Sequence record: OQ427096.1
Length of the DNA stretch: 64,000 nt
Direction: 5' to 3' (one strand)
The notes under the pieces were generated by a model that saw only the letters and a program-made list of their open reading frames with translations, was not told the origin of the DNA and did no database searches. Numbering within the stretch: the first letter of the stretch is position 1; every line of letters starts with the position of its first letter. This document shows positions 7,243 through 16,399 of the stretch, one piece after another. Both the position numbers and the translations under genes were made by a program.

Positions 7243-7488
7243 TTACTTGGTCTCTGCCAGGACTTCGGTACGTCCCAGATGCACAGCCCGCAGCCCGTCC
7301 TCGGTCATGTAGGCCAGGACCAGCTTGCCCTCGACACGCTTGGGCTTGGAGCGGGTATGGAGCCAGTACTTGAAGTCTGCCTCTTCCTGCTTCCGCTCCA
7401 TCCATTCACGCTGGAAGGGAGTCGGGTTGTAGAGCGCCAGCTTGTCGCTGGAGTCGGACACGGTCTGGGTTTCCATTTCGTCACACAT
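7243..7488 (-). CDS. Hypothetical protein, paralog of 6063-6314
   Basis: 81 aa with GAGGAG RBS; own promoter upstream and terminator downstream. Confidence 0.7.
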   Translation of the reverse strand: MCDEMETQTVSDSSDKLALYNPTPFQREWMERKQEEADFKYWLHTRSKPKRVEGKLVLAYMTEDGLRAVHLGRTEVLAETK

Positions 7489-7531
7489 GATCTACTCCTC
7501 TGTTATTTCAGCCTCCGATTGAGGCAATCAA

Positions 7532-7560
7532 ACTGTAACGGAGTTCTTTCTGCAGGACAA
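7532..7560 (-). promoter_or_regulatory. Sigma70-like early promoter
   Basis: Minus strand TTGTCC-N17-TACAGT; same -35 hexamer as the 7137-7166 promoter. Confidence 0.55.
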
Positions 7561-7604
7561 CCACTTTGTGAAGGTTGCGGAGTCCGCTGATCTGTGTTTA
7601 GAAA

Positions 7605-7832
7605 TTACGACCACTCCGGTCCCGTTTCATCGACCCCAGAGCCACGGGTCCTCTCTACCAACTCCTTGACTAGCGGCTTGACGGTGTAGTAATAGAGCAT
7701 GGGTCTCTGTTCCATCTCAGCTGCATTGAGGCGCCTTTCCTCTGCGACTGCTTCTTCCTTTGTCTCGAATGGTCCCTGTACAGAGACGATGTTACAACCC
7801 ACTCGATAGTGTTCAACGATTACGTATGCCAT
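7605..7832 (-). CDS. Hypothetical protein
   Basis: Probable start MAYVIVE at 7832, just after the stop of the upstream ORF. Confidence 0.55.
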   Translation of the reverse strand: MAYVIVEHYRVGCNIVSVQGPFETKEEAVAEERRLNAAEMEQRPMLYYYTVKPLVKELVERTRGSGVDETGPEWS

Positions 7833-7836
7833 TGTC

Positions 7837-8037
7837 TTAGTCCCATAGTCCGCTGTGTGACTCATCTTTGAACCACTGCTTGGCACGTTCCTGTTCCGAC
7901 TCGGTCATGAGTGGGTATGCTGCATTAACCAACCCATGTCTCTTGCAGACAAGATTCTGTCTTGCTCGGATGCTGCTACTCCAGTCCCATAGGATGGGTC
8001 GAAGCAGTTGGTTGATGTATTCCTCTCTGTAGCTCAT
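7837..8037 (-). CDS. Hypothetical protein
   Basis: Start MSYREE overlaps the ATP-grasp stop (ATGA). Confidence 0.55.
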   Translation of the reverse strand: MSYREEYINQLLRPILWDWSSSIRARQNLVCKRHGLVNAAYPLMTESEQERAKQWFKDESHSGLWD

Positions 8038-8840
8038 AGCTTCTCTGCCCATTCGGTCATTGCGGTTACGATCTTATCAATGCGGTGGTCGTAGAAACCT
8101 GCGCAGTTGAAAGTGTTGAATTCGATCACCTTCATTCCATCCTCTGTATCGGCGACGTCCATAACACAGCAAGGATGAGGCAACCACTTGTCTGCGAGTG
8201 CCTGAGCGTGTTTGTAGGCTTCGGGATCGTTCAAGTGCTCAGACATGAGCCGTCCGCCGAAACGATACAGTGAGCCATCGATCACCTTTCCGTCGACAAT
8301 GAACCATCGCGACTCGCAGTAGATGTGCTTTACTGCGGCTACGATGACCTGTGTGTCTTCGCCAAACTCAAACGAACCAGAACGAGGACTCTGCATCCAG
8401 TCTCGGATGTCTGCCGTATCTGCGACAGTACCGTTGAAGGCTTTGAGATCCTTGACCGGACGAATGAACCACTTCTTGTCGTCGGCGCAGTCTCGGAAAT
8501 AGCGATTCAGCTCTTTGATTGTCAGGTGAATGCAATCGCCATTGAGCATATCGTCACGTTCCGCATTCCATCGGATAGCGTCGAAACGTTCGTTGTCGTA
8601 GCAGTTGCCTTTCCATTTCCGCTCGTTGGCCATCTTCGCCAACTTGACTGAGCCGTAGGGAATGATCACTGTGTCGTCCGGGATGTTCTCATACTCTGAT
8701 TCGTTGCCGAACTCTAGAGAAAACGGAATGACCGATGCTTCGACGGTCTGACAACCCAATGCCTTTGCCGCATTCCATACAGCCTCAGCCGTGTGATCTG
8801 CTACTAGGTTTGTCTGTACTGCCCATGTGACTTTGTTCAT
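8034..8840 (-). CDS. ATP-grasp domain protein (DUF4343/R2K-like)
   Basis: Start MNKVTW at 8840 with AAGGAG RBS. Motifs IIPYGS, WFIRPVKDLKAFNG, ESRWFIVDGKV, VMDVA......KVIEFNTFNCAGFY. Confidence 0.75.
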   Translation of the reverse strand: MNKVTWAVQTNLVADHTAEAVWNAAKALGCQTVEASVIPFSLEFGNESEYENIPDDTVIIPYGSVKLAKMANERKWKGNCYDNERFDAIRWNAERDDMLNGDCIHLTIKELNRYFRDCADDKKWFIRPVKDLKAFNGTVADTADIRDWMQSPRSGSFEFGEDTQVIVAAVKHIYCESRWFIVDGKVIDGSLYRFGGRLMSEHLNDPEAYKHAQALADKWLPHPCCVMDVADTEDGMKVIEFNTFNCAGFYDHRIDKIVTAMTEWAEKL

Positions 8841-8908
8841 AGTTCGCTCCTTATGCCACGGCAATAGCCAGGTTTCCCTGGCTACCACCAACCCCTACTA
8901 CGAGGTTT

Positions 8909-10273
8909 TTACTTGCTGGTCAACCTGTCCAGGACCTGCTTGCCTACGTCCGACTGTGCCAGACCTTCGAGCATGCCGGCGATCTTCGTACCGCCCTTCG
9001 GACCGAACATGTCCAGGACGTTGGTCACGCCTTCGTTCGGGTTGCCTGCATTGCTGATTACCTTGATCTCAGCACCCTGCAGAGCCTTCGCACCCTCGAC
9101 GCCGATCTTCTCGCTGGCCTCGACCTGACGGAGATCAATCAGGTACTTCTGGTAACCCTGGTTCTCACCGATTTCCTTAGCCAGGGTGATCTGTGCCTGC
9201 ACCGGCGCCAGCTGCATCGCCTTCTCAGCTTCTGCCTTTGCCGTACCCTCAGCCTGGATACCTTCCGCGTTCAGCTTCTGAGCAGCCAGGTTACCTTCTG
9301 CGACCAGTGTCGTGCGCTGCTTCTGTGCTTCTGCGTTGATCACTTCCTGCTGGCGCTCACCTTCTGCCTGCACGATCGCGACGTCCTTGACCTCGTTCGC
9401 CTTGACCACAGCCACCTTACGCTGAATCTCCGAAGAACGAGTTGCCTCGACTTCCTTGACTTCCATCTGACGAACAGTCGTTTCACGCTGAGCCGTCAGC
9501 ACTTCCTGCTGCGAACTTTCCTTCGCGATACCGACCGCCTTTTCCTTCTCAGCCGTTCGCTGACCGATAGCCTGTTGGGCTTCCTGATCACGCAGCTGAA
9601 CCGTCTGGGCTGCTGCAATTTCCGCAGTCTTTGCCTGCTGGGTGTTCTCAGCAACTGCGACACGGCTGTCACGTTCAATTGCCGAAGTGCGCTTGGCCAT
9701 GATGTTGGCGATCACACTCGAACCCTTGGCATCTCGGATGTCCATCAGCTCGATGTTCTTCACCGGCTCGACACCCCAGTTTTTCAGCTGCTCGCCGACT
9801 TCCTTAGTGAACTGGTCACCGAAGGTAGCGCGGTCCACCATGATCGTGTCGATTTCATGCGAGGCCAGAATGGTTCGCACCGCACCCTGTACAACCGAAG
9901 TCAGCTGTTCCTTCAGTTCATCGAAGCTCGACACTCGCTGCGCCGCAACGTTCGAGTCTGCGATTCGGAAGAAGCTCGTCACGTCAACAACGAACGGAAC
10001 ACGTTCCTTATCGTACGCCTCGTATGCGCTCAGGCTCAGGTCGAAGACCGACACAGGCAGGATGATGCGCGTCAGACCCAGCAGAGGAATCCAGGAAGGC
10101 CAGTTGTAGTAAGTGTTGCCACCATCCTGGTCCTTACCGTACGAGGTCTGCGACTTCGAACGCTGGAGCGTGTGTACTTCATTCGCCGGAACGACGACAC
10201 GCAGGTTCAGCACCCAGAAGATAGCTGCAACTGCCACGAGTGCCGCAATGCCTGCACCAATGAGAATAAACAT
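8909..10273 (-). CDS. SPFH/Band-7 flotillin-like membrane protein
   Basis: N-terminal TM helix, RVVVP.NEVH, SPFH core (VQGAVRTILASHEID) and long Ala/Glu/Gln coiled coil with AEAEA-type flotillin repeats. Confidence 0.85.
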   Translation of the reverse strand: MFILIGAGIAALVAVAAIFWVLNLRVVVPANEVHTLQRSKSQTSYGKDQDGGNTYYNWPSWIPLLGLTRIILPVSVFDLSLSAYEAYDKERVPFVVDVTSFFRIADSNVAAQRVSSFDELKEQLTSVVQGAVRTILASHEIDTIMVDRATFGDQFTKEVGEQLKNWGVEPVKNIELMDIRDAKGSSVIANIMAKRTSAIERDSRVAVAENTQQAKTAEIAAAQTVQLRDQEAQQAIGQRTAEKEKAVGIAKESSQQEVLTAQRETTVRQMEVKEVEATRSSEIQRKVAVVKANEVKDVAIVQAEGERQQEVINAEAQKQRTTLVAEGNLAAQKLNAEGIQAEGTAKAEAEKAMQLAPVQAQITLAKEIGENQGYQKYLIDLRQVEASEKIGVEGAKALQGAEIKVISNAGNPNEGVTNVLDMFGPKGGTKIAGMLEGLAQSDVGKQVLDRLTSK

Positions 10274-10842
10274 CAGATCAGATTTCCTTCTTTATCAATG
10301 AATTGGTTGGTTACGTTTTCAATAACGCCAGGTACGTAAAAGACCTGTACATCGTCGCACACTCGGAAGAAGTTCTTGAAGTCCCAATACCCTTCGTCCG
10401 GGCTAGCGAGCAATTCCTGCATAAGAGAGCTGAAGAAGTCTACAAACTGTTCTGCCGCTTCCAGGTTCGCGTACTTCTCATCTTCCTTACGTGGATCATT
10501 ATAACGGAGCGCCAACTGTTCGTCATACAGTTCGATCTGCTCTACTGTCGGCAGCGCGTCTTCGGTGCCCCAACGTTTCGCAGCGACCTCCGGATACTTG
10601 CCAGCAGCATACAGCCACAGGTTGAACAGTTCAACCGTTTCGTTTTCGTCGTTGCCGGTTACCTTGTACGGCAGGTCGGTTTCGCGCTTCTTGTAGCGAG
10701 ACTCGAAAGCCTTCGCGAGCAGCACGTAGAACTGTGCTTCATCTTTCGTCAGACCAGAAAGAATTTCCGTCTTGTAGTTGTCGGCGTCGTTTTCCCACGA
10801 CAGTACGTGTACCTGATAGCCGGGCTTGATGTTCTTGCTCAT
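10273..10842 (-). CDS. Hypothetical phage protein
   Basis: 189 aa; SWENDADNY and FRV...V.VFY motifs; TGATG-coupled to the flotillin gene. Confidence 0.7.
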   Translation of the reverse strand: MSKNIKPGYQVHVLSWENDADNYKTEILSGLTKDEAQFYVLLAKAFESRYKKRETDLPYKVTGNDENETVELFNLWLYAAGKYPEVAAKRWGTEDALPTVEQIELYDEQLALRYNDPRKEDEKYANLEAAEQFVDFFSSLMQELLASPDEGYWDFKNFFRVCDDVQVFYVPGVIENVTNQFIDKEGNLI

Positions 10843-11123
10843 TTCAGTCCTTGATAGTAGGTCTTGAGTTCTTCGAGGAACTGCTGTTTCCTCAACAGAG
10901 CCTCAGCGGTGTTGGCGATCATGCTTCCGACGAATTCCTTCGGAGGAATCACGTCGAGTTCGATATCGTAGCTGTACTCACAGTGAATCGCCCAGGTCTC
11001 CCTGCTGTGGAGAATTTCGTACCAGGCGTCTTCTTTGTCTCCATTGAAGTCACCTTCGAAATACTTCCACTGACCCCAGCCGTGTCCGCCTCTACCACTG
11101 ATCCAGTATCGGTTGAACTTCAT
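10839..11123 (-). CDS. Hypothetical protein
   Basis: 94 aa, overlapping start/stop with both neighbours. Confidence 0.65.
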   Translation of the reverse strand: MKFNRYWISGRGGHGWGQWKYFEGDFNGDKEDAWYEILHSRETWAIHCEYSYDIELDVIPPKEFVGSMIANTAEALLRKQQFLEELKTYYQGLK

Positions 11124-11536
11124 GGCGCAGCCTTCTCGTAGAAGCGAAGAGTGTTGTACTCATCGTCGCTGATACGAACGACCTTCGATGCCTTGGCTTC
11201 CTCTTCGGCGAGGTTCATGATGCGACGAAGCTCAGCACGATCATCATCGTACCGCGAGAGGTGCATACGCCAAGTACCGAAACCCCAACCATCAGGGTCA
11301 GTCCATGTCTTTCGCTCTTCGATCCACTCATCAAACGGCAGGATCGTTTCGACTTCCCAGACACCCAGCTTGGTCAGCCAACGATTGTTGCGTCGCTTGT
11401 TCTCATCGACGTGCCACTGATAACGGTCACCTTTGTAGGTGTCAACCCATGCTTCATGAGCACGAGCATTGACACCTTCACGAGCCCGCTTTGCGATATC
11501 GAAGATGAAGTCAGCATCGAATTCACGAGTAGCCAT
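11120..11536 (-). CDS. Hypothetical protein (Trp-rich)
   Basis: 138 aa, coupled to neighbours. Confidence 0.65.
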   Translation of the reverse strand: MATREFDADFIFDIAKRAREGVNARAHEAWVDTYKGDRYQWHVDENKRRNNRWLTKLGVWEVETILPFDEWIEERKTWTDPDGWGFGTWRMHLSRYDDDRAELRRIMNLAEEEAKASKVVRISDDEYNTLRFYEKAAP

Positions 11537-11946
11537 CAGTAGCCTCGCTCGTTGTATCGCTGAGTACGCTCTTCCTTGGTCAGAACACGGACAAAGTCCA
11601 CACGCTCAGAGTAGTACCCGTTGGAGGAACCACGCCAGGTGATGTGAACGAATTCGCGCTCGGTGCGGATGCGGTAGAATGTCCAGGTGACAGAATCGTA
11701 CTGACGAGTTTCATCACTGTTGGATTCCACAGTCGCAGAACGGATCGGAGAACCAACCAGAGCGTGAACGTCGCCATCAATGGCGTCGATGTAGACATTC
11801 TCGCAGCAGTTCTGCTGATGGAACATCACGAAGTGCTTTCCACAGGTGGTGTGGAAGTCGATCTGGTCGTTGGTCTTCTCTACGCGCTCGAGAGTCAGAC
11901 CGATCAGGTCGTCGAGCGGAACATGCTCAAATGAATCGTATCGCAT
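11536..11946 (-). CDS. Conserved phage hypothetical protein (HxQxCCE / WTFY / SNGYYSE)
   Basis: Motifs FHQQNCCENV, TWTFYRIRT and WRGSSNGYYSE, which I recall from an uncharacterised phage protein family. Confidence 0.7.
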   Translation of the reverse strand: MRYDSFEHVPLDDLIGLTLERVEKTNDQIDFHTTCGKHFVMFHQQNCCENVYIDAIDGDVHALVGSPIRSATVESNSDETRQYDSVTWTFYRIRTEREFVHITWRGSSNGYYSERVDFVRVLTKEERTQRYNERGY

Positions 11947-11955
11947 TGTATTTCC

Positions 11956-12348
11956 TTACCAGTCGTAGTTGAGGCCCTTGGTAGGGTTCTTAAGAATGCT
12001 CTCACGCCATTCGTGGAAGCTCTCTTCGGTGTACTCTTCCTTGCATCCGAAAATGGACTCATAGAGATCGATCCACTCGACAGCTTGATAACGCTCGTAG
12101 CCGAGGTCATGCAAGCGCTCTTCGCGGGCACCATCTTCGATCTTTACGAGCATGTGCAGTTCGCCACAGCCGTAGTCTTCGAATTCGAAGATGATGTCTT
12201 CCTTGCAGAGGCGCTTGTAGGCAGCCCAACGGTCTTTGAAAGGAATAGCCTTGTTGCTAAGTTCTTTGATGACAGACTTTGCAGCGTCATCAGCAACTTG
12301 CCGAAGAGAAATCACGGCGTCAATTGCTTCTTTGTTAAGAGCGGTCAT
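11956..12348 (-). CDS. Hypothetical protein
   Basis: Probable start MTALNK at 12348. Confidence 0.6.
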   Translation of the reverse strand: MTALNKEAIDAVISLRQVADDAAKSVIKELSNKAIPFKDRWAAYKRLCKEDIIFEFEDYGCGELHMLVKIEDGAREERLHDLGYERYQAVEWIDLYESIFGCKEEYTEESFHEWRESILKNPTKGLNYDW

Positions 12349-12586
12349 TACGTGTCCTGAAGGCTTTGGCAGCTTGCTCGAGAGCAGCCGTGCGGAAGAG
12401 GGTCTGTGCGATGTTGAGTGACTCAATGCCAGGAATCAGGTTGAGCATGGACGCACATTCGCGAACCACGCCCTTCGATTTCAGGATGCCGGTTTCAGAC
12501 ATCCTGGTCAGCTCATGAGCACCCTCAGCCAGATTTGCTTCGGCAAATTTCTTTGCCGATTCCATGATCCGGATAATCTCGCTCAC
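12335..12586 (-). CDS. Hypothetical protein
   Basis: GTG start overlaps the pilin-like stop (GTGA). Confidence 0.6.
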   Translation of the reverse strand: MSEIIRIMESAKKFAEANLAEGAHELTRMSETGILKSKGVVRECASMLNLIPGIESLNIAQTLFRTAALEQAAKAFRTRNDRS

Positions 12587-12831
12587 TGGCAGACGATCGT
12601 GTTGCCGTTGGAGTCCTTCATAAGCACCGCGCCTTCGGGAGACACGACGTACTTCTGACCGTCGATACAGCGAGCCTCATACGAGACCTCAGCTGCCGGA
12701 CGAGAGATGTTCGACCCACCACTAGCCCAGGTCTTGAATGCCGGAATGGCAATCGCAGCCAGGATGGCAATGATCGCAACAACGATCATCAGTTCAATCA
12801 GCGTGAAGCCTTTTGCGTTCGAATTCTTCAT
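12583..12831 (-). CDS. Type IV pilin-like protein (class III signal peptide, truncated globular head)
   Basis: MKNSNAKG|FTLIELMIVVAIIAILAAIAIPAF is a canonical prepilin cleavage/methylation motif with Glu at +5, followed by only ~50 aa with two Cys. Confidence 0.85.
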   Translation of the reverse strand: MKNSNAKGFTLIELMIVVAIIAILAAIAIPAFKTWASGGSNISRPAAEVSYEARCIDGQKYVVSPEGAVLMKDSNGNTIVCQ

Positions 12832-13015
12832 AGCGTTCAATGTAAGCCTCATAATGTTGACCGTGTTGGGTCTTGAATTTGGAATCGAGATGGTCTGCTT
12901 GCTTGAAGTGACGATTGGCTTTCGCCTCGTCGTCACGATCGTTCCACGCGTTCATCAAGCTGGCGAACACAGCACTTCTCACTGCCTGCGCCAACTGATA
13001 TGTTGCGAAGTTCAT
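12794..13015 (-). CDS. Hypothetical protein
   Basis: ATGA overlap with the upstream stop; its 3' end overlaps the pilin-like start by 38 nt. Confidence 0.5.
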   Translation of the reverse strand: MNFATYQLAQAVRSAVFASLMNAWNDRDDEAKANRHFKQADHLDSKFKTQHGQHYEAYIERYEEFERKRLHAD

Positions 13016-13233
13016 TTTGCTACCTGGATGCAGTACGCCTTACTTTGGATTGTATAGTAATAGCCCGCTTCTAACTTTCGTACTTCCTGTGAAAGATAGT
13101 TCGCCTGTTGGAGACAAAGTTCTTTCGTCTCCACCGGAATGGTGGTCTGCGAAACCGAAGGTACACAGCCTGTACCTCCGCACGTTGGTTTGCTGATCAT
13201 CACCAGAACGAGCGCCCACTTTGCCAGGATCAT
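13012..13233 (-). CDS. Small exported Cys-rich protein
   Basis: Hydrophobic N-terminus (MILAKWALVLVMIS) and four Cys in 73 aa. Confidence 0.55.
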   Translation of the reverse strand: MILAKWALVLVMISKPTCGGTGCVPSVSQTTIPVETKELCLQQANYLSQEVRKLEAGYYYTIQSKAYCIQVAK

Positions 13234-13565
13234 TCGCCGTACTCCAGGCGAATCTGACGCGCCAGCTTGGTCAGGAATTCGTGCTCACCGCCGTAGTCCT
13301 GGAAAGAAAGACGACGGTCTTCACCGTTGTGAATGCGGAACGAACTGCCGTGACCCTTGGTCTGGACTTCGGCACCGGTCAGTGTGAACGGAATGTAGTA
13401 GCGGTCGTACGCCTTGTCGTACTCTACCTTGGGCAGCGGTGGAAAGATCTCGTCGAGAATAGCTTTCGCTTCTTCAGAAAAATCGCACTGGTCTTTGCCT
13501 TGGGCTTCGAGCAGAGCGTCGGCGAGGTACTCAATCTTTTCTTGGCGTGTTCTGTTCATGTTCAC
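13230..13565 (-). CDS. Hypothetical protein, first gene of the - strand island
   Basis: 111 aa; ATGA-coupled to the next gene. Confidence 0.65.
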   Translation of the reverse strand: MNMNRTRQEKIEYLADALLEAQGKDQCDFSEEAKAILDEIFPPLPKVEYDKAYDRYYIPFTLTGAEVQTKGHGSSFRIHNGEDRRLSFQDYGGEHEFLTKLARQIRLEYGE

Positions 13566-13566
13566 A

Positions 13567-13606
13567 ATGCTACAGTTCGCCTACGAAAGAACAACCGTGG
13601 TAAATA
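13567..13606. promoter_or_regulatory. Back-to-back promoters: sigma70-like (minus) and late TAAATA (plus)
   Basis: Minus strand TTGTTC-N16-TAGCAT at 13567-13594; plus strand TAAATA at 13601-13606. Confidence 0.5.
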
Positions 13607-13631
13607 TTCGTGTACCTCCAAGGACTTTGTA

Positions 13632-15470
13632 ATGGCAGGCTTTAAACAGACAATTATTTCGCACGCACCGAAGATGTTTCTTACATTCGACGGTGATGCC
13701 TACGATCCGAACAGCCGAATGCTAACGGCTAGCCCTCAGGTCTTCATCGACGAGTCGGGTTTCAACTCCAACATCATGCTGCACAATGAGTCAGAAGTCT
13801 ACCCAGCCTATCGCATGGGTATCCCTTCTCTGATTGACATTGAGCAGACAGATCAACGTAGCACATCATTCGGTTGGTATGGCTATCAGCCGCTTGCGCC
13901 TACCCGTTGGCCAAAGTCTTTCGTAGAAGTGCAGCACCAGTCTCATCTTGCTCTAACCGCAGAGCGAGGTTCCTACACTGTTGGCTTCTTTGTCAACAAG
14001 GCAGAGAAGGAAGACAAGTGGCGCGACCAAGAACGCATCCTAGGGTTCAACCACTACACACAGACACTCAACAAGCGCTTCATCCGCAAGGCTGGGTCGT
14101 TTGACGTCTACTTCCGTGACTATTGGTCAGCCGCCGAAGAGATTCGTTTCGGTTACCCAGGCGGCGGTGAGATTGTCTGGGTTGTGCCTGATTGGTTCTA
14201 CGGGAAGAAGAACTTCGTTGTCTGTACTTGGAAGATCACGGAAATCAATCCTGACGTCTATCTCAACGAGGCCTATCTTTACGTCAACGGCCATCTGTAT
14301 GGCAGCTATTCGACAACTACGGCTGGCACTTTCCCGAACAGCACAACAACCACTCCAATCGAGATCGCTGGCGTAATCAACTCTTCATCATACTTTGAAG
14401 ACCGTCAGACGAGCGACCTGCAACTCGATCAGATGTTCATCCTCAACAAAGCGTTGACCCAGGACGAAATCTGTCGCTTGTATAGAAAGTCTAAGTCTTA
14501 CGACAACATCGCAGTGCAGGCTCAGGCATCAGCATACTGGCCAATGACAGATGTGGAAGACCCAGCAGTATTCACGATTAAGGATTTGGTAGGCTACAAT
14601 GACGGTGTGTATCTTGGTGGTGTGACACGCGTAGCACGACAGCAGACTGCTCCGAGTCCTATCCTAGGTGGCTCATCTGTCTACTTCCACAATGGTGGTA
14701 TGGGTGCAGCGCACAGACTGACGAACATTACAACCTATACTCCAGTGTTCAACTTCAACGGCGATTGGACGATTGATCTTTGGATGCAGTTCTCAAACAC
14801 AGATCGTTCGGTACTCTTCTCCTGTCAGAAGGACGACTATCCGCATGGTGGTGTGCTGATTGAAGTTAATCGCCGTAACAACACCAACGTGCCAGGTCAT
14901 ATCCAGCTGTCAGTAAGTCAGGAGTTCTACGTTTCTTCTCTTCTCAATCGAGACAATGGTCAGCCTTTCAACTTCAATGATGGTAGGTTCCACCACGTCG
15001 CAGCAGTCCGAAAGGGGAGCACTGTTACTCTCTGGATTGACGGCATCAAGCACGGTTCGGTGAGTGCACCTGTTCAGAGTCTTTCCAACCCAGGTCCGGG
15101 GCAGGTGTACTTCATGGGCGCCGCCCCAGGCAGTCTAAATACCACTGGCTACATGTCTGCGGTTGGTGTCTATCCTTACGCTCTGGATGATGCTGAGATT
15201 AGACTGCGTAATCTGTACTCGTTGATCTATCGTATCCAAGGCAATGTCACACTGCAAGGTAACCCGTATCGTGCTACTGTGCGTGCTTTCAGTCATAGGA
15301 CAGGCGTGTTGATTCGTGAGATCGAGTCCTCGACATCTTCAGGTGACTACTCGATGACATTGTATGACAACTCTTTGATTGACCTGATGGTCATGAACAA
15401 GCAAGACCCTAATATTCGCTATCGAGTCTATGGACCGATTGCACCAGCTCTTTATGAGGATGTTCCATAA
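13632..15470 (+). CDS. LamG/concanavalin-A-like domain virion protein with C-terminal beta-sandwich module
   Basis: True start probably MAGFKQ at 13632 (AAGGA RBS, TAAATA upstream). AYWPM.D, DWTIDLW, FHHVAAVRKG..VTLWIDG LamG signatures. Confidence 0.7.
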   Translation: MAGFKQTIISHAPKMFLTFDGDAYDPNSRMLTASPQVFIDESGFNSNIMLHNESEVYPAYRMGIPSLIDIEQTDQRSTSFGWYGYQPLAPTRWPKSFVEVQHQSHLALTAERGSYTVGFFVNKAEKEDKWRDQERILGFNHYTQTLNKRFIRKAGSFDVYFRDYWSAAEEIRFGYPGGGEIVWVVPDWFYGKKNFVVCTWKITEINPDVYLNEAYLYVNGHLYGSYSTTTAGTFPNSTTTTPIEIAGVINSSSYFEDRQTSDLQLDQMFILNKALTQDEICRLYRKSKSYDNIAVQAQASAYWPMTDVEDPAVFTIKDLVGYNDGVYLGGVTRVARQQTAPSPILGGSSVYFHNGGMGAAHRLTNITTYTPVFNFNGDWTIDLWMQFSNTDRSVLFSCQKDDYPHGGVLIEVNRRNNTNVPGHIQLSVSQEFYVSSLLNRDNGQPFNFNDGRFHHVAAVRKGSTVTLWIDGIKHGSVSAPVQSLSNPGPGQVYFMGAAPGSLNTTGYMSAVGVYPYALDDAEIRLRNLYSLIYRIQGNVTLQGNPYRATVRAFSHRTGVLIREIESSTSSGDYSMTLYDNSLIDLMVMNKQDPNIRYRVYGPIAPALYEDVP

Positions 15471-16399
15471 TGGCAGTTACCCAGTATCTCTACACCGACA
15501 CCGACGCTCCAGTTCTCTACGGGCAGCCTGGGGCTTTCATCACAGTGCTGAAAGCTGTTCTTGTGAACGGTTATGGCACCAAGCCTGGTATGGGTTGGAC
15601 GCTAGAGTACGAGTCAGGAACGATCGCAGTATTCCGTAACTCGACCGCTGCGGGCTCGACAGGCATGTACCTGCGAGTAGATGACTCTAACTGGCAGTAT
15701 GCGATTGTCAAGGCCTACAAGACAATGTCGGACATTTCGACTGGAACTGATGCTATTCCTGGCGTCCTGCCTTCTTACAGCAATTCAAATATCTTCTGGC
15801 CTAAGTCAGCAAACAATAACAACAACGCTATCATGTGGAACTTCATCGGCGACGAGAGAACGTTCTACCTGAATATTTGTCCTTGGTCAAGCCAGAACGC
15901 TAATCAGTTTGCGAACTATGCGTATATCTACGCTGCGGGCGATTACGACTCCTACGTTCCTAGCTTTGCTCACAACTATTTTGTGGCAGGAAATTACGAC
16001 GGTGGCTATTCATCGAATGGTCCTTGTATGATCGACGATCAGAGTTCCTACGTATGCTGTGCTATTGGACGTGCGCAGGACAATGTCGCTGACAAATACT
16101 CCAAGGCATGGGTAAGCTACATGGCAGGTGGTGTACCTTCCGGATCATACAATCATCAAGCGTTCTCAGTCTACACAGGACAGAGAATCTTCTATCCTGC
16201 ATATGTGATGGAAAATGCTGTCCAGACCAATATCACAGGTAAGTGGCGTGGTTTGTACGGAATGGTAGGTCGCTCAAACTTCACATGGAATGAGAACTAC
16301 GGCAAGCTCCCAAACAACCCAACCGGTCCTGATTTGATTCAGTTCACAGTTTCCAATAACAGCAGTCAGGGCGTCTACATCTTGAACGGAGGCTGGTAA
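15470..16399 (+). CDS. Virion/tail structural protein
   Basis: DAPVL.G..G....VLKAVLVNGYG.K...GWT and W..IGDERTFYL motifs, recalled from phage tail appendage proteins. Confidence 0.6.
   Translation: MAVTQYLYTDTDAPVLYGQPGAFITVLKAVLVNGYGTKPGMGWTLEYESGTIAVFRNSTAAGSTGMYLRVDDSNWQYAIVKAYKTMSDISTGTDAIPGVLPSYSNSNIFWPKSANNNNNAIMWNFIGDERTFYLNICPWSSQNANQFANYAYIYAAGDYDSYVPSFAHNYFVAGNYDGGYSSNGPCMIDDQSSYVCCAIGRAQDNVADKYSKAWVSYMAGGVPSGSYNHQAFSVYTGQRIFYPAYVMENAVQTNITGKWRGLYGMVGRSNFTWNENYGKLPNNPTGPDLIQFTVSNNSSQGVYILNGGW

Follow-up and report, generated by a model that had tools for sequence, protein, structure and literature searches.

What use could a lytic phage have for a protein that begins as a type IV pilin and ends as something else? 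The question is raised by a gene of Xanthomonas phage X1 encoding 82 amino acids, which we call the mini-pilin and which lies on the minus strand of the 64,000-nucleotide stretch analysed here (hereafter, the window), taken from sequence record OQ427096.1. The X1 genome counts 200,058 bp in total, and identity to Xanthomonas phage BUDD amounts to 87% over bases 10000-16000 of the window. X1, a myovirus, is strictly lytic, and its latent period lasts ~60 min; pilins go unmentioned in the paper describing it (PMC13384950). Its host is X. campestris pv. campestris 8004, in agreement with an initial annotation of the locus, which had expected a host bearing type IV pili (T4P), such as one of the Xanthomonadales. 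The required T4P machinery is present in the host family in the form of pilA-pilBCD-pilSR clusters, and pilus-dependent competitors exist, as exemplified by T4P-binding phages of Xylella and Xanthomonas (PMC7504290). The same annotation had read the gene as a possible decoy that caps or jams host pili, an interpretation that is reasonable, although unproven. In our opinion, the most likely reading, whose chances we judge to be about even, is indeed that the X1 mini-pilin would be a PilD-processed decoy pilin interfering with T4P biogenesis. The open reading frame (ORF) is present where it had been annotated, and its parts are as follows.

12583..12831, minus strand: mini-pilin coding sequence, ATG at 12831, stop TGA at 12585-12583, 82 amino acids
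12808..12831, minus strand: prepilin leader M1-G8 (MKNSNAKG), basic, last residue Gly(-1), predicted PilD cleavage between G8 and F9
12736..12807, minus strand: alpha1-N assembly/transmembrane helix F9-F32, mature residues 1-24, with F1, T2, E5 and P22 present
12679..12735, minus strand: variable Gly/Ser-rich linker K33-Y51, standing where ordinary pilins have alpha1-C
12586..12678, minus strand: Cys-bracketed beta-module E52-Q82, with C55 at 12667-12669 and C81 at 12589-12591

The N-terminus is that of a prepilin. It reads M-K-N-S-N-A-K-G up to the predicted cleavage site and F-T-L-I-E-L-M-I-V-V-A-I-I-A-I-L-A-A-I-A-I-P-A-F after it, so that the short basic leader, Gly(-1), F(+1) and Glu(+5) of type IV pilin-like proteins are all found, as is the hydrophobic alpha1-N, with a maximal Kyte-Doolittle value (19-residue window) of 3.09 at residues 11-29. 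In pilins, G(-1), F1 and E5 are the residues required for PilD cleavage, assembly and recognition. Both the Pfam N_methyl model (PF07963; 41.1 bits against a cutoff of 21.2, E=1e-10) and NCBIfam TIGR02532 (36.8 bits against 16.3) recognise the protein, which bears out the complete class III leader, KG followed by F, that had been noted earlier. AlphaFold2 (AF2) models a helix at residues 11-36 with a predicted local distance difference test score (pLDDT) of 96. The near-identity to gammaproteobacterial PilA that had also been noted is valid for this part of the protein: a run of 25 residues (KGFTLIELMIVVAIIAILAAIAIPA) is fully identical between the mini-pilin and P0034, a 135-residue PF00114 pilin, and the same stretch is matched by many named Shewanella pilins. 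Among partial NCBIfam matches, T4 pilins come first (PpdD-type, 43 bits; PilA, 41.5 bits), with the pseudopilin models of the type II secretion system (T2SS) scoring lower (GspH ~32 bits, GspG 26 bits). We rejected a GspH/FimU-type head, as the GspH model covers residues 7-34 only, at 31.9 bits against a cutoff of 80, and no Pfam head-domain model matches. The T2SS major pseudopilin GspG was rejected as well, TIGR01710 giving 26 bits against a cutoff of 88.85 and reaching the N-terminus only.

Past the helix, the likeness to pilins ends. F32 is followed by 50 residues with cysteines at positions 55 and 81, 25 residues apart. The initial annotation had thus described the length and the Cys pair of the tail correctly, while the resemblance to a pilin D-region that it saw there is not supported: when the family profile was compared with 20 canonical pilins by hhalign, the alignment extended only to about residue 41, and the sheet modelled for the tail has no neighbour in the PDB. 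Because profile-profile alignment is limited to the first ~40 residues, the tail is not a recognisable remnant of a pilin head or D-region, and homology of this kind was rejected; PF00114 gives no match to the mini-pilin either. With the family alignment as input, AF2 returned a model of mean pLDDT 84, in which linker K33-Y51, whose length differs across the family, is of low confidence and non-helical, and residues 52-56, 59-64 and 67-70 form a three-stranded sheet at pLDDT 92-95. A PilA-type architecture is likewise rejected, as the helix, which stops at residue 36, gives way to a disordered linker and this mini-sheet, with no alpha1-C and no four-stranded head. Foldseek found no PDB neighbour of the model below E=0.5; against BFVD it gave weak matches only (E ~0.02), to phage proteins that are equally small and uncharacterised, Acidovorax phage ACP17 and Vibrio phage nt-1 being among the sources. 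The module is not covered by any Pfam or NCBIfam model, both libraries recognising the N-terminal motif only. The six pilin-like families of PHROGs also match essentially the N-terminus, with phrog_13280 extending to residue 66, in X1 only, and the match to PHROG 10597 (59 positions) being confined to residues 6-35 of the X1 protein. The module of X1 keeps both cysteines, which may form a C55-C81 disulfide, and the scaffold residues G58, K60, Y61, G67, D73, G76 and I79.

This module defines a family. A seven-member profile was searched against 1.84 billion cluster representatives, and end-to-end matches of 70-115 amino acids made up 104 of the 147 top-listed hits (three query members excluded); X1 itself aligned to the family profile end to end with 142 bits. 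Mini-pilins of 70-100 amino acids fill more than 100 clusters at 50% identity. We define the X1 type, which the X1 protein fits, as proteins of 70-100 amino acids with a prepilin N-terminus, a variable linker and the module C-x2-G-[YF]-K-[FYV]...G...Q..D..G.G[VI].C near the C-terminus. Typical members are composed of a leader (median 5 residues), the pilin helix, a Gly/Ser/Asn-rich linker of variable length and the Cys-bracketed module of ~30 residues, whose cysteines are a median 26 residues apart and the second of which stands a median 2 residues before the C-terminus. In an alignment of 99 members (A3), both cysteines are present in 99/99, an invariance that is partly by construction, since members were chosen for the Cys pair; G58 and G76 are found in at least 94%, and the aromatic-Lys-aromatic triplet, the Gln and the Asp are strongly conserved. 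One subgroup (P0143, P0423-P0428, P0455 and others) continues past the second Cys with a conserved extension, E-N-P-N-A-G-K-P-G-S-F-G, and some of its members have M-S in place of F-T after the cleavage Gly. In the libraries and literature that we searched, we found no description of an X1-type family with the conserved module.

The gene is maintained across considerable divergence, and its occurrence lies far beyond chance. Orthologs of the X1 mini-pilin occur in BUDD (87% amino acid identity), in L003, a 13-kb Logan contig (84%), and in the sewage contigs L011 and L012 (48%). In BUDD and in two metagenomic relatives, the gene is found at the equivalent, syntenic place. The L011 locus retains the gene order of X1 (a divergent LamG-domain structural gene, three small ORFs and the mini-pilin), with flanking proteins merely 34-70% identical to those of X1. 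In the X1/BUDD/L003 trio, the ratio of nonsynonymous to synonymous substitution rates (dN/dS) of the mini-pilin is 0.43-0.51 versus 0.12-0.32 in adjoining genes, values that are based on 25-29 substitutions, mostly in the linker. By region, dN in the trio amounts to 0.30-0.42 in the linker and to 0.025-0.07 in the helix and the C-terminal part. Deeper pairs within the family give dN/dS of ~0.09-0.22, with dS saturated. The decay that had been considered at the outset, with dN/dS near 1 in relatives, is therefore not what these pairs display: the mini-pilin is a real gene under purifying selection, and pseudogene-like decay is excluded.

Our preference for a decoy stems from the combination of a retained assembly N-terminus, a head replaced by a small, flexibly tethered knob, and the presence of the gene in lytic phages. 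We envisage the following scenario, in which processing by PilD, membrane location, contact with the T4P machine and phenotype are all predictions from sequence. The pilin helix would carry the mini-pilin into the inner membrane, where host PilD would cut the 8-residue leader between G8 and F9 and methylate F9. The mature product of 74 residues (~7.8 kDa) would possess a full alpha1-N (F1, E5, P22), recognisable by PilD, the assembly platform and neighbouring subunits, and a flexible linker with a putatively disulfide-closed beta-knob of 31 residues in place of alpha1-C and the globular head. As a mimic of PilA, it might then join the pilin pool of the membrane and enter the T4P machine or dock on it, stalling or capping extension or giving defective filaments, so that infected cells would lack functional pili; alternatively, it might alter the filament. 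The outcome would be the exclusion of pilus-dependent competitor phages and the arrest of twitching during the ~60-min latent period. It is tempting to go further and to suppose that X1-type mini-pilins are widespread, previously undescribed effectors of virulent phages, whose knob makes them chain-terminating or capping subunits, and that they provide a generic PilD-activated shutdown of pili, possibly also of secretion or competence filaments, within minutes and in hosts of many phyla, perhaps together with phage SPFH/Band_7 scaffolds. We regard this broader proposal as possible, if doubtful.

As regards the surroundings of the gene, all the mini-pilin contexts that we examined were cultured phages, viral contigs or metagenomic contigs of phage-like character. 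The cultured phages carrying an X1-type mini-pilin are X1, BUDD and Synechococcus phage BUCT-ZZ01, to which seven IMG/VR viral contigs of 28-168 kb can be added. On metagenomic contigs, the gene is found in arrays of small co-directional ORFs with DNA ligase, T4-type RNA ligases, endonuclease V, rIIB and NAMPT/NUDIX genes. Among the top 120 profile hits from a 5.8-billion-protein collection, none (0/120) was located on a contig longer than 136 kb; ordinary pilins from our first search were on multi-megabase chromosomes. The 141 pilin-like ORFs in the 80 bacterial loci listed by a pilin-motif scan included no mini-pilin (0/141). On one metagenomic phage contig, a 75-residue mini-pilin (P0006) is preceded, ~2.3 kb upstream, by a gene (L005:1212-1400) for a 62-residue protein bearing the superinfection-immunity domain of T4 Imm (PF14373).

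The X1 locus itself includes the following neighbours.

12794..13015, minus strand: upstream ORF of 73 amino acids, overlapping the mini-pilin start by 38 nt, without annotation in the X1 record
12335..12586, minus strand: downstream ORF of 83 amino acids, whose GTG start overlaps the mini-pilin TGA stop (GTGA, 12583-12586)
8909..10273, minus strand: SPFH/Band_7-domain protein, by annotation, in the leftward gene cluster of the mini-pilin; context and not a proven partner

In the GenBank entry OQ427096.1, the mini-pilin is the 'hypothetical protein' WEM34242.1 (12583..12840, 85 amino acids), which starts from a TTG at 12840, 9 nt upstream of the ATG at 12831. Since an in-frame TAA precedes the ATG by 18 nt in the distant ortholog of L011, we consider the ATG at 12831 to be the conserved start. 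The upstream ORF of 73 residues is annotated in BUDD (USV40914.1) and called in L003, and its L011 ortholog is 57% identical. The downstream ORF has a dN/dS of 0.15, and an overlapping form is annotated in BUDD; the GenBank version in X1 is shorter (76 amino acids, start at 12565). Its GTGA overlap with the mini-pilin suggests co-transcription and translational coupling. No PADLOC-DB model was matched by the mini-pilin or by six neighbouring proteins. On the opposite strand, the longest ORF (749 amino acids, TTG start, 13221-15470, plus strand) reaches ~410 nt upstream of the annotated start of the LamG-domain gene (13632); as the longer form overlaps the divergent small genes, the shorter annotated start is probably right.

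Genes for Band_7/SPFH proteins recur close to mini-pilins.

L179:9052-9846, L181:8993-9787 and L182:4816-5610: Band_7/SPFH gene, 0-1 genes apart from the mini-pilin
L014:4734-5546: Band_7/SPFH gene, ~0.4 kb apart
270-kb contig of P0133: Band_7/SPFH gene, 0.7 kb apart
X1/BUDD (X1 8909-10273, minus strand): Band_7/SPFH gene, 2.3 kb apart

Such a gene lies within 0-2.5 kb of the mini-pilin in at least 2-3 independent phage lineages, whereas the 72 control viral loci gave a single weak case; many mini-pilin loci, including that of L003, have no Band_7 gene nearby. On the 136-kb contig L179 (5712-10273), an unannotated gene of 725 codons, a T4 rIIB-like gene, Band_7, a 52-residue ORF and the mini-pilin stand in a row that looks like a cluster of membrane-associated early-type functions. 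L003 (5324-7337, corresponding to 7243-11123 of the window) keeps the mini-pilin and misses the 189-residue, SPFH and ATP-grasp genes of X1 and BUDD, a difference that amounts to an indel of ~3 kb within the mini-pilin gene cluster.

Several points weigh against a decoy pilin. The initial annotation had spoken of an early-expressed decoy, yet a promoter and terminator scan around the gene yielded nothing above shuffled expectation, which lends the early timing no support. The conserved beta-module has no known partner and is not obviously something that a pure poison would need, and the X1 clade deviates from the module consensus of A3 (Q70 to L, Y/F59 to Q, with T78 also off). Exclusion of X1 by its own mini-pilin is not implied. 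Chromosomal copies of mini-pilins may exist, the bacterial scan having been limited to the 80 loci listed, and the repeated presence of Band_7/SPFH and rIIB genes nearby may point to a role at the membrane, perhaps unrelated to pili. Finally, A3 was selected by profile, with a bias towards conserved N-termini, and its pattern filter required G...E, making the invariance of the Gly and the Glu partly circular. For this last reason, we assessed G(-1) and E5 in a module-only search, for which the last 44 residues of a consensus-like member alone served as seed and for scoring, and which returned 210 proteins. The best 120 of these 210 were all 76-97 amino acids long; G(-1) was present in at least 116/120 and E(+5) in at least 114/120, with the exceptions resembling 5'-truncated gene calls. 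Both residues were retained even where the hydrophobic helix had diverged. This near-universal set of G(-1), F1 and E5 is what a decoy pilin would need.

The same result bears on the possibility that the prepilin N-terminus is an anchor only, which merely displays the beta-module in the periplasm to some non-pilus target, for instance the timing of lysis, the integrity of the envelope or membrane domains of the SPFH/FtsH type. No conserved part of the protein is more distinctive than the module, which is devoid of pilin homology, and the frequency of Band_7/SPFH genes around mini-pilins relative to control loci, together with the adjoining rIIB of L179, fits such a role. However, G(-1), F1, T2 and E5, near-universal as they are, and the frequent P22 would be superfluous for a plain anchor; in the length range searched, the module-only search found no module behind a Sec or lipoprotein signal; and the SPFH gene is missing from L003 and Band_7 from the vicinity of many other family loci. 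Overall, we consider an anchor unlikely. At the other extreme, the mini-pilin might be nothing but a captured fragment of a host pilA gene. The ORF is short, lacks a pilin head and is annotated only as hypothetical, but synteny is kept across deep divergence, dN/dS is well below 1, and hundreds of related sequences share a conserved and confidently folded module, so that a non-functional remnant is effectively excluded.

Two further explanations keep the pilin-like N-terminus in a functional role and change its target. In one of them, alpha1-N would be read as part of the pilin inventory by sensors of the PilS-PilR or PleC type, turning pilin expression off or triggering retraction or second-messenger signalling, with no entry into the filament. 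A 2016 study by Kilmury and Burrows, cited in PMC6058289, reportedly showed that P. aeruginosa PilA regulates pilA through intramembrane contacts with PilS, which speaks for such a mimic. In Caulobacter, a pilin transmembrane peptide of 17 residues is enough for signalling and cuts susceptibility to phage CbK by ~77% within 10 min (PMC7196804), and a latent period of ~60 min would allow transcriptional effects. On the other hand, pilA of Xanthomonas axonopodis pv. citri is reportedly controlled by PilR and not by PilS (PMC7170775), a transcriptional shut-off would not remove existing pilin, and the conserved C-terminal module would be left without a role; we therefore find this explanation quite unlikely. 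In the other, the decoy would act on the T2SS pseudopilus or a competence pilus, and not on the T4a pilus. The class III signal and PilD are common to T2SS pseudopilins, the GspH and GspG models give partial N-terminal matches, and the T2SS can reportedly be needed for phage infection in a related plant pathogen (PMC9765573). Nevertheless, the GspG and GspH scores are far under their cutoffs, and the N-terminus, down to the IPA(F/Y) end of alpha1-N, is closest to T4a major pilins, which makes this option very unlikely.

A decoy acting on T4P would be of some consequence. T4P are major phage receptors, motility organs and virulence factors, and the selection, docking and polymerisation of pilins are poorly understood; a natural protein of 74 residues, composed of an assembly helix and a knob of 30 residues, would serve as a minimal probe of recognition by the T4P machine, and large lytic phages supply hundreds of diverged X1-type sequences. 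If the mini-pilin does poison or cap pili, receptor-mimicry exclusion would no longer be limited to the temperate Pseudomonas prophages in which it has been shown so far, but would also hold for virulent phages infecting many hosts, and a recurrent 'hypothetical' gene of T4-like and jumbo phages would be explained. It would also provide a template for anti-pilus peptides, and interference would be predicted between X1-like and pilus-dependent phages in Xanthomonas biocontrol cocktails.

Finally, we would like to place the X1 mini-pilin among known systems. The initial annotation held that phage anti-pilus proteins are not pilin mimics, a statement since superseded by Sztanko et al. (Cell Rep 2026; PMC12952977), who demonstrated that prophage FimU mimics enter the P. 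aeruginosa pilus and block tip-binding phages. Their database searches also revealed four groups of PilA-like proteins in virulent phages, one of them truncated to ~60 residues, for which they suggested incorporation into the pilus or inhibition of its assembly; given these proposals, the general idea is already in print as a hypothesis. The P-FimU proteins of F10-like Pseudomonas phages resemble the X1 mini-pilin in being phage-encoded, with a prepilin N-terminus that exploits host T4P, and were shown to block pilus-dependent phages (PMC12952977). However, they are full-size minor pilins with a GspH/FimU-type head, come from temperate prophages and preserve pilus function, whereas the X1 protein has 82 residues, no head domain and an unrelated C-terminal module, and belongs to a strictly lytic phage. 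The truncated PilA-like protein of virulent Pseudomonas phages (PAK_P5 AGR89608.1; PMC12952977) is a headless pilin helix for which the same hypotheses have been proposed. It differs in its 59 amino acids and its charged, Cys-free tail, where the X1 family has a linker and a Cys-bracketed beta-module; this direct comparison of tails, together with the N-terminal-only match to PHROG 10597, excludes the X1 mini-pilin from the PAK_P5 type.

Searching phage genomes for short ORFs with prepilin motifs, as had been proposed at the outset, we ran tblastn with a family member as query, and 173 phage records, from phages of Synechococcus, Pseudomonas, Vibrio, Aeromonas, Xanthomonas, Acinetobacter and Delftia, turned out to contain pilin-like N-termini. 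KVP40.0030 (66 amino acids; L094:3004-3204) and its counterparts in Vibrio phages (L178:3001-3249) occupy a fixed site between dexA/dut and td (thymidylate synthase), the tail of this short ORF differing from one KVP40-like phage to another. The Xanthomonas jumbo phage PhiXhv-15 encodes an unrelated 'type IV pilus subunit' of 99 amino acids. Like the X1 gene, KVP40.0030, NVP1081O_058 of Vibrio phage 1.081.O and the PhiXhv-15 gene combine a prepilin N-terminus with a short tail and lie amid nucleotide-metabolism or early-type small genes of large virulent phages; their tails, in contrast, are unrelated to the X1-type module, so that they represent separate kinds of mini-pilin. Mini-pilins thus recur in large virulent phages, with those of the X1 type forming one well-defined subfamily.

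Outside the phage pilin-like genes, PilA (PF00114 and PF07963) shares with the X1 mini-pilin the leader, G(-1), F1, E5, P22 and the 25 identical residues, and differs in possessing alpha1-C and the four-stranded head. Aqs1 and Tip, which bind PilB, and PfsE, which binds PilC, cause the loss of pilus function and the superinfection exclusion that we propose for X1 (PMC13436744 and PMC8764522); they are set apart by not being pilin-like and by targeting cytoplasmic or platform components. The Caulobacter CIP peptide, a 17-residue pilin transmembrane signal, is another headless helix, able to impair pilus function and to make cells less susceptible to a pilus phage, but it is host-derived, stems from a type IVc pilin, signals via PleC and has no C-terminal module. 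Overall, the X1 mini-pilin belongs with the phage-encoded pilin mimics, among which it is set off by the size of its family, its conservation and its novel small module.

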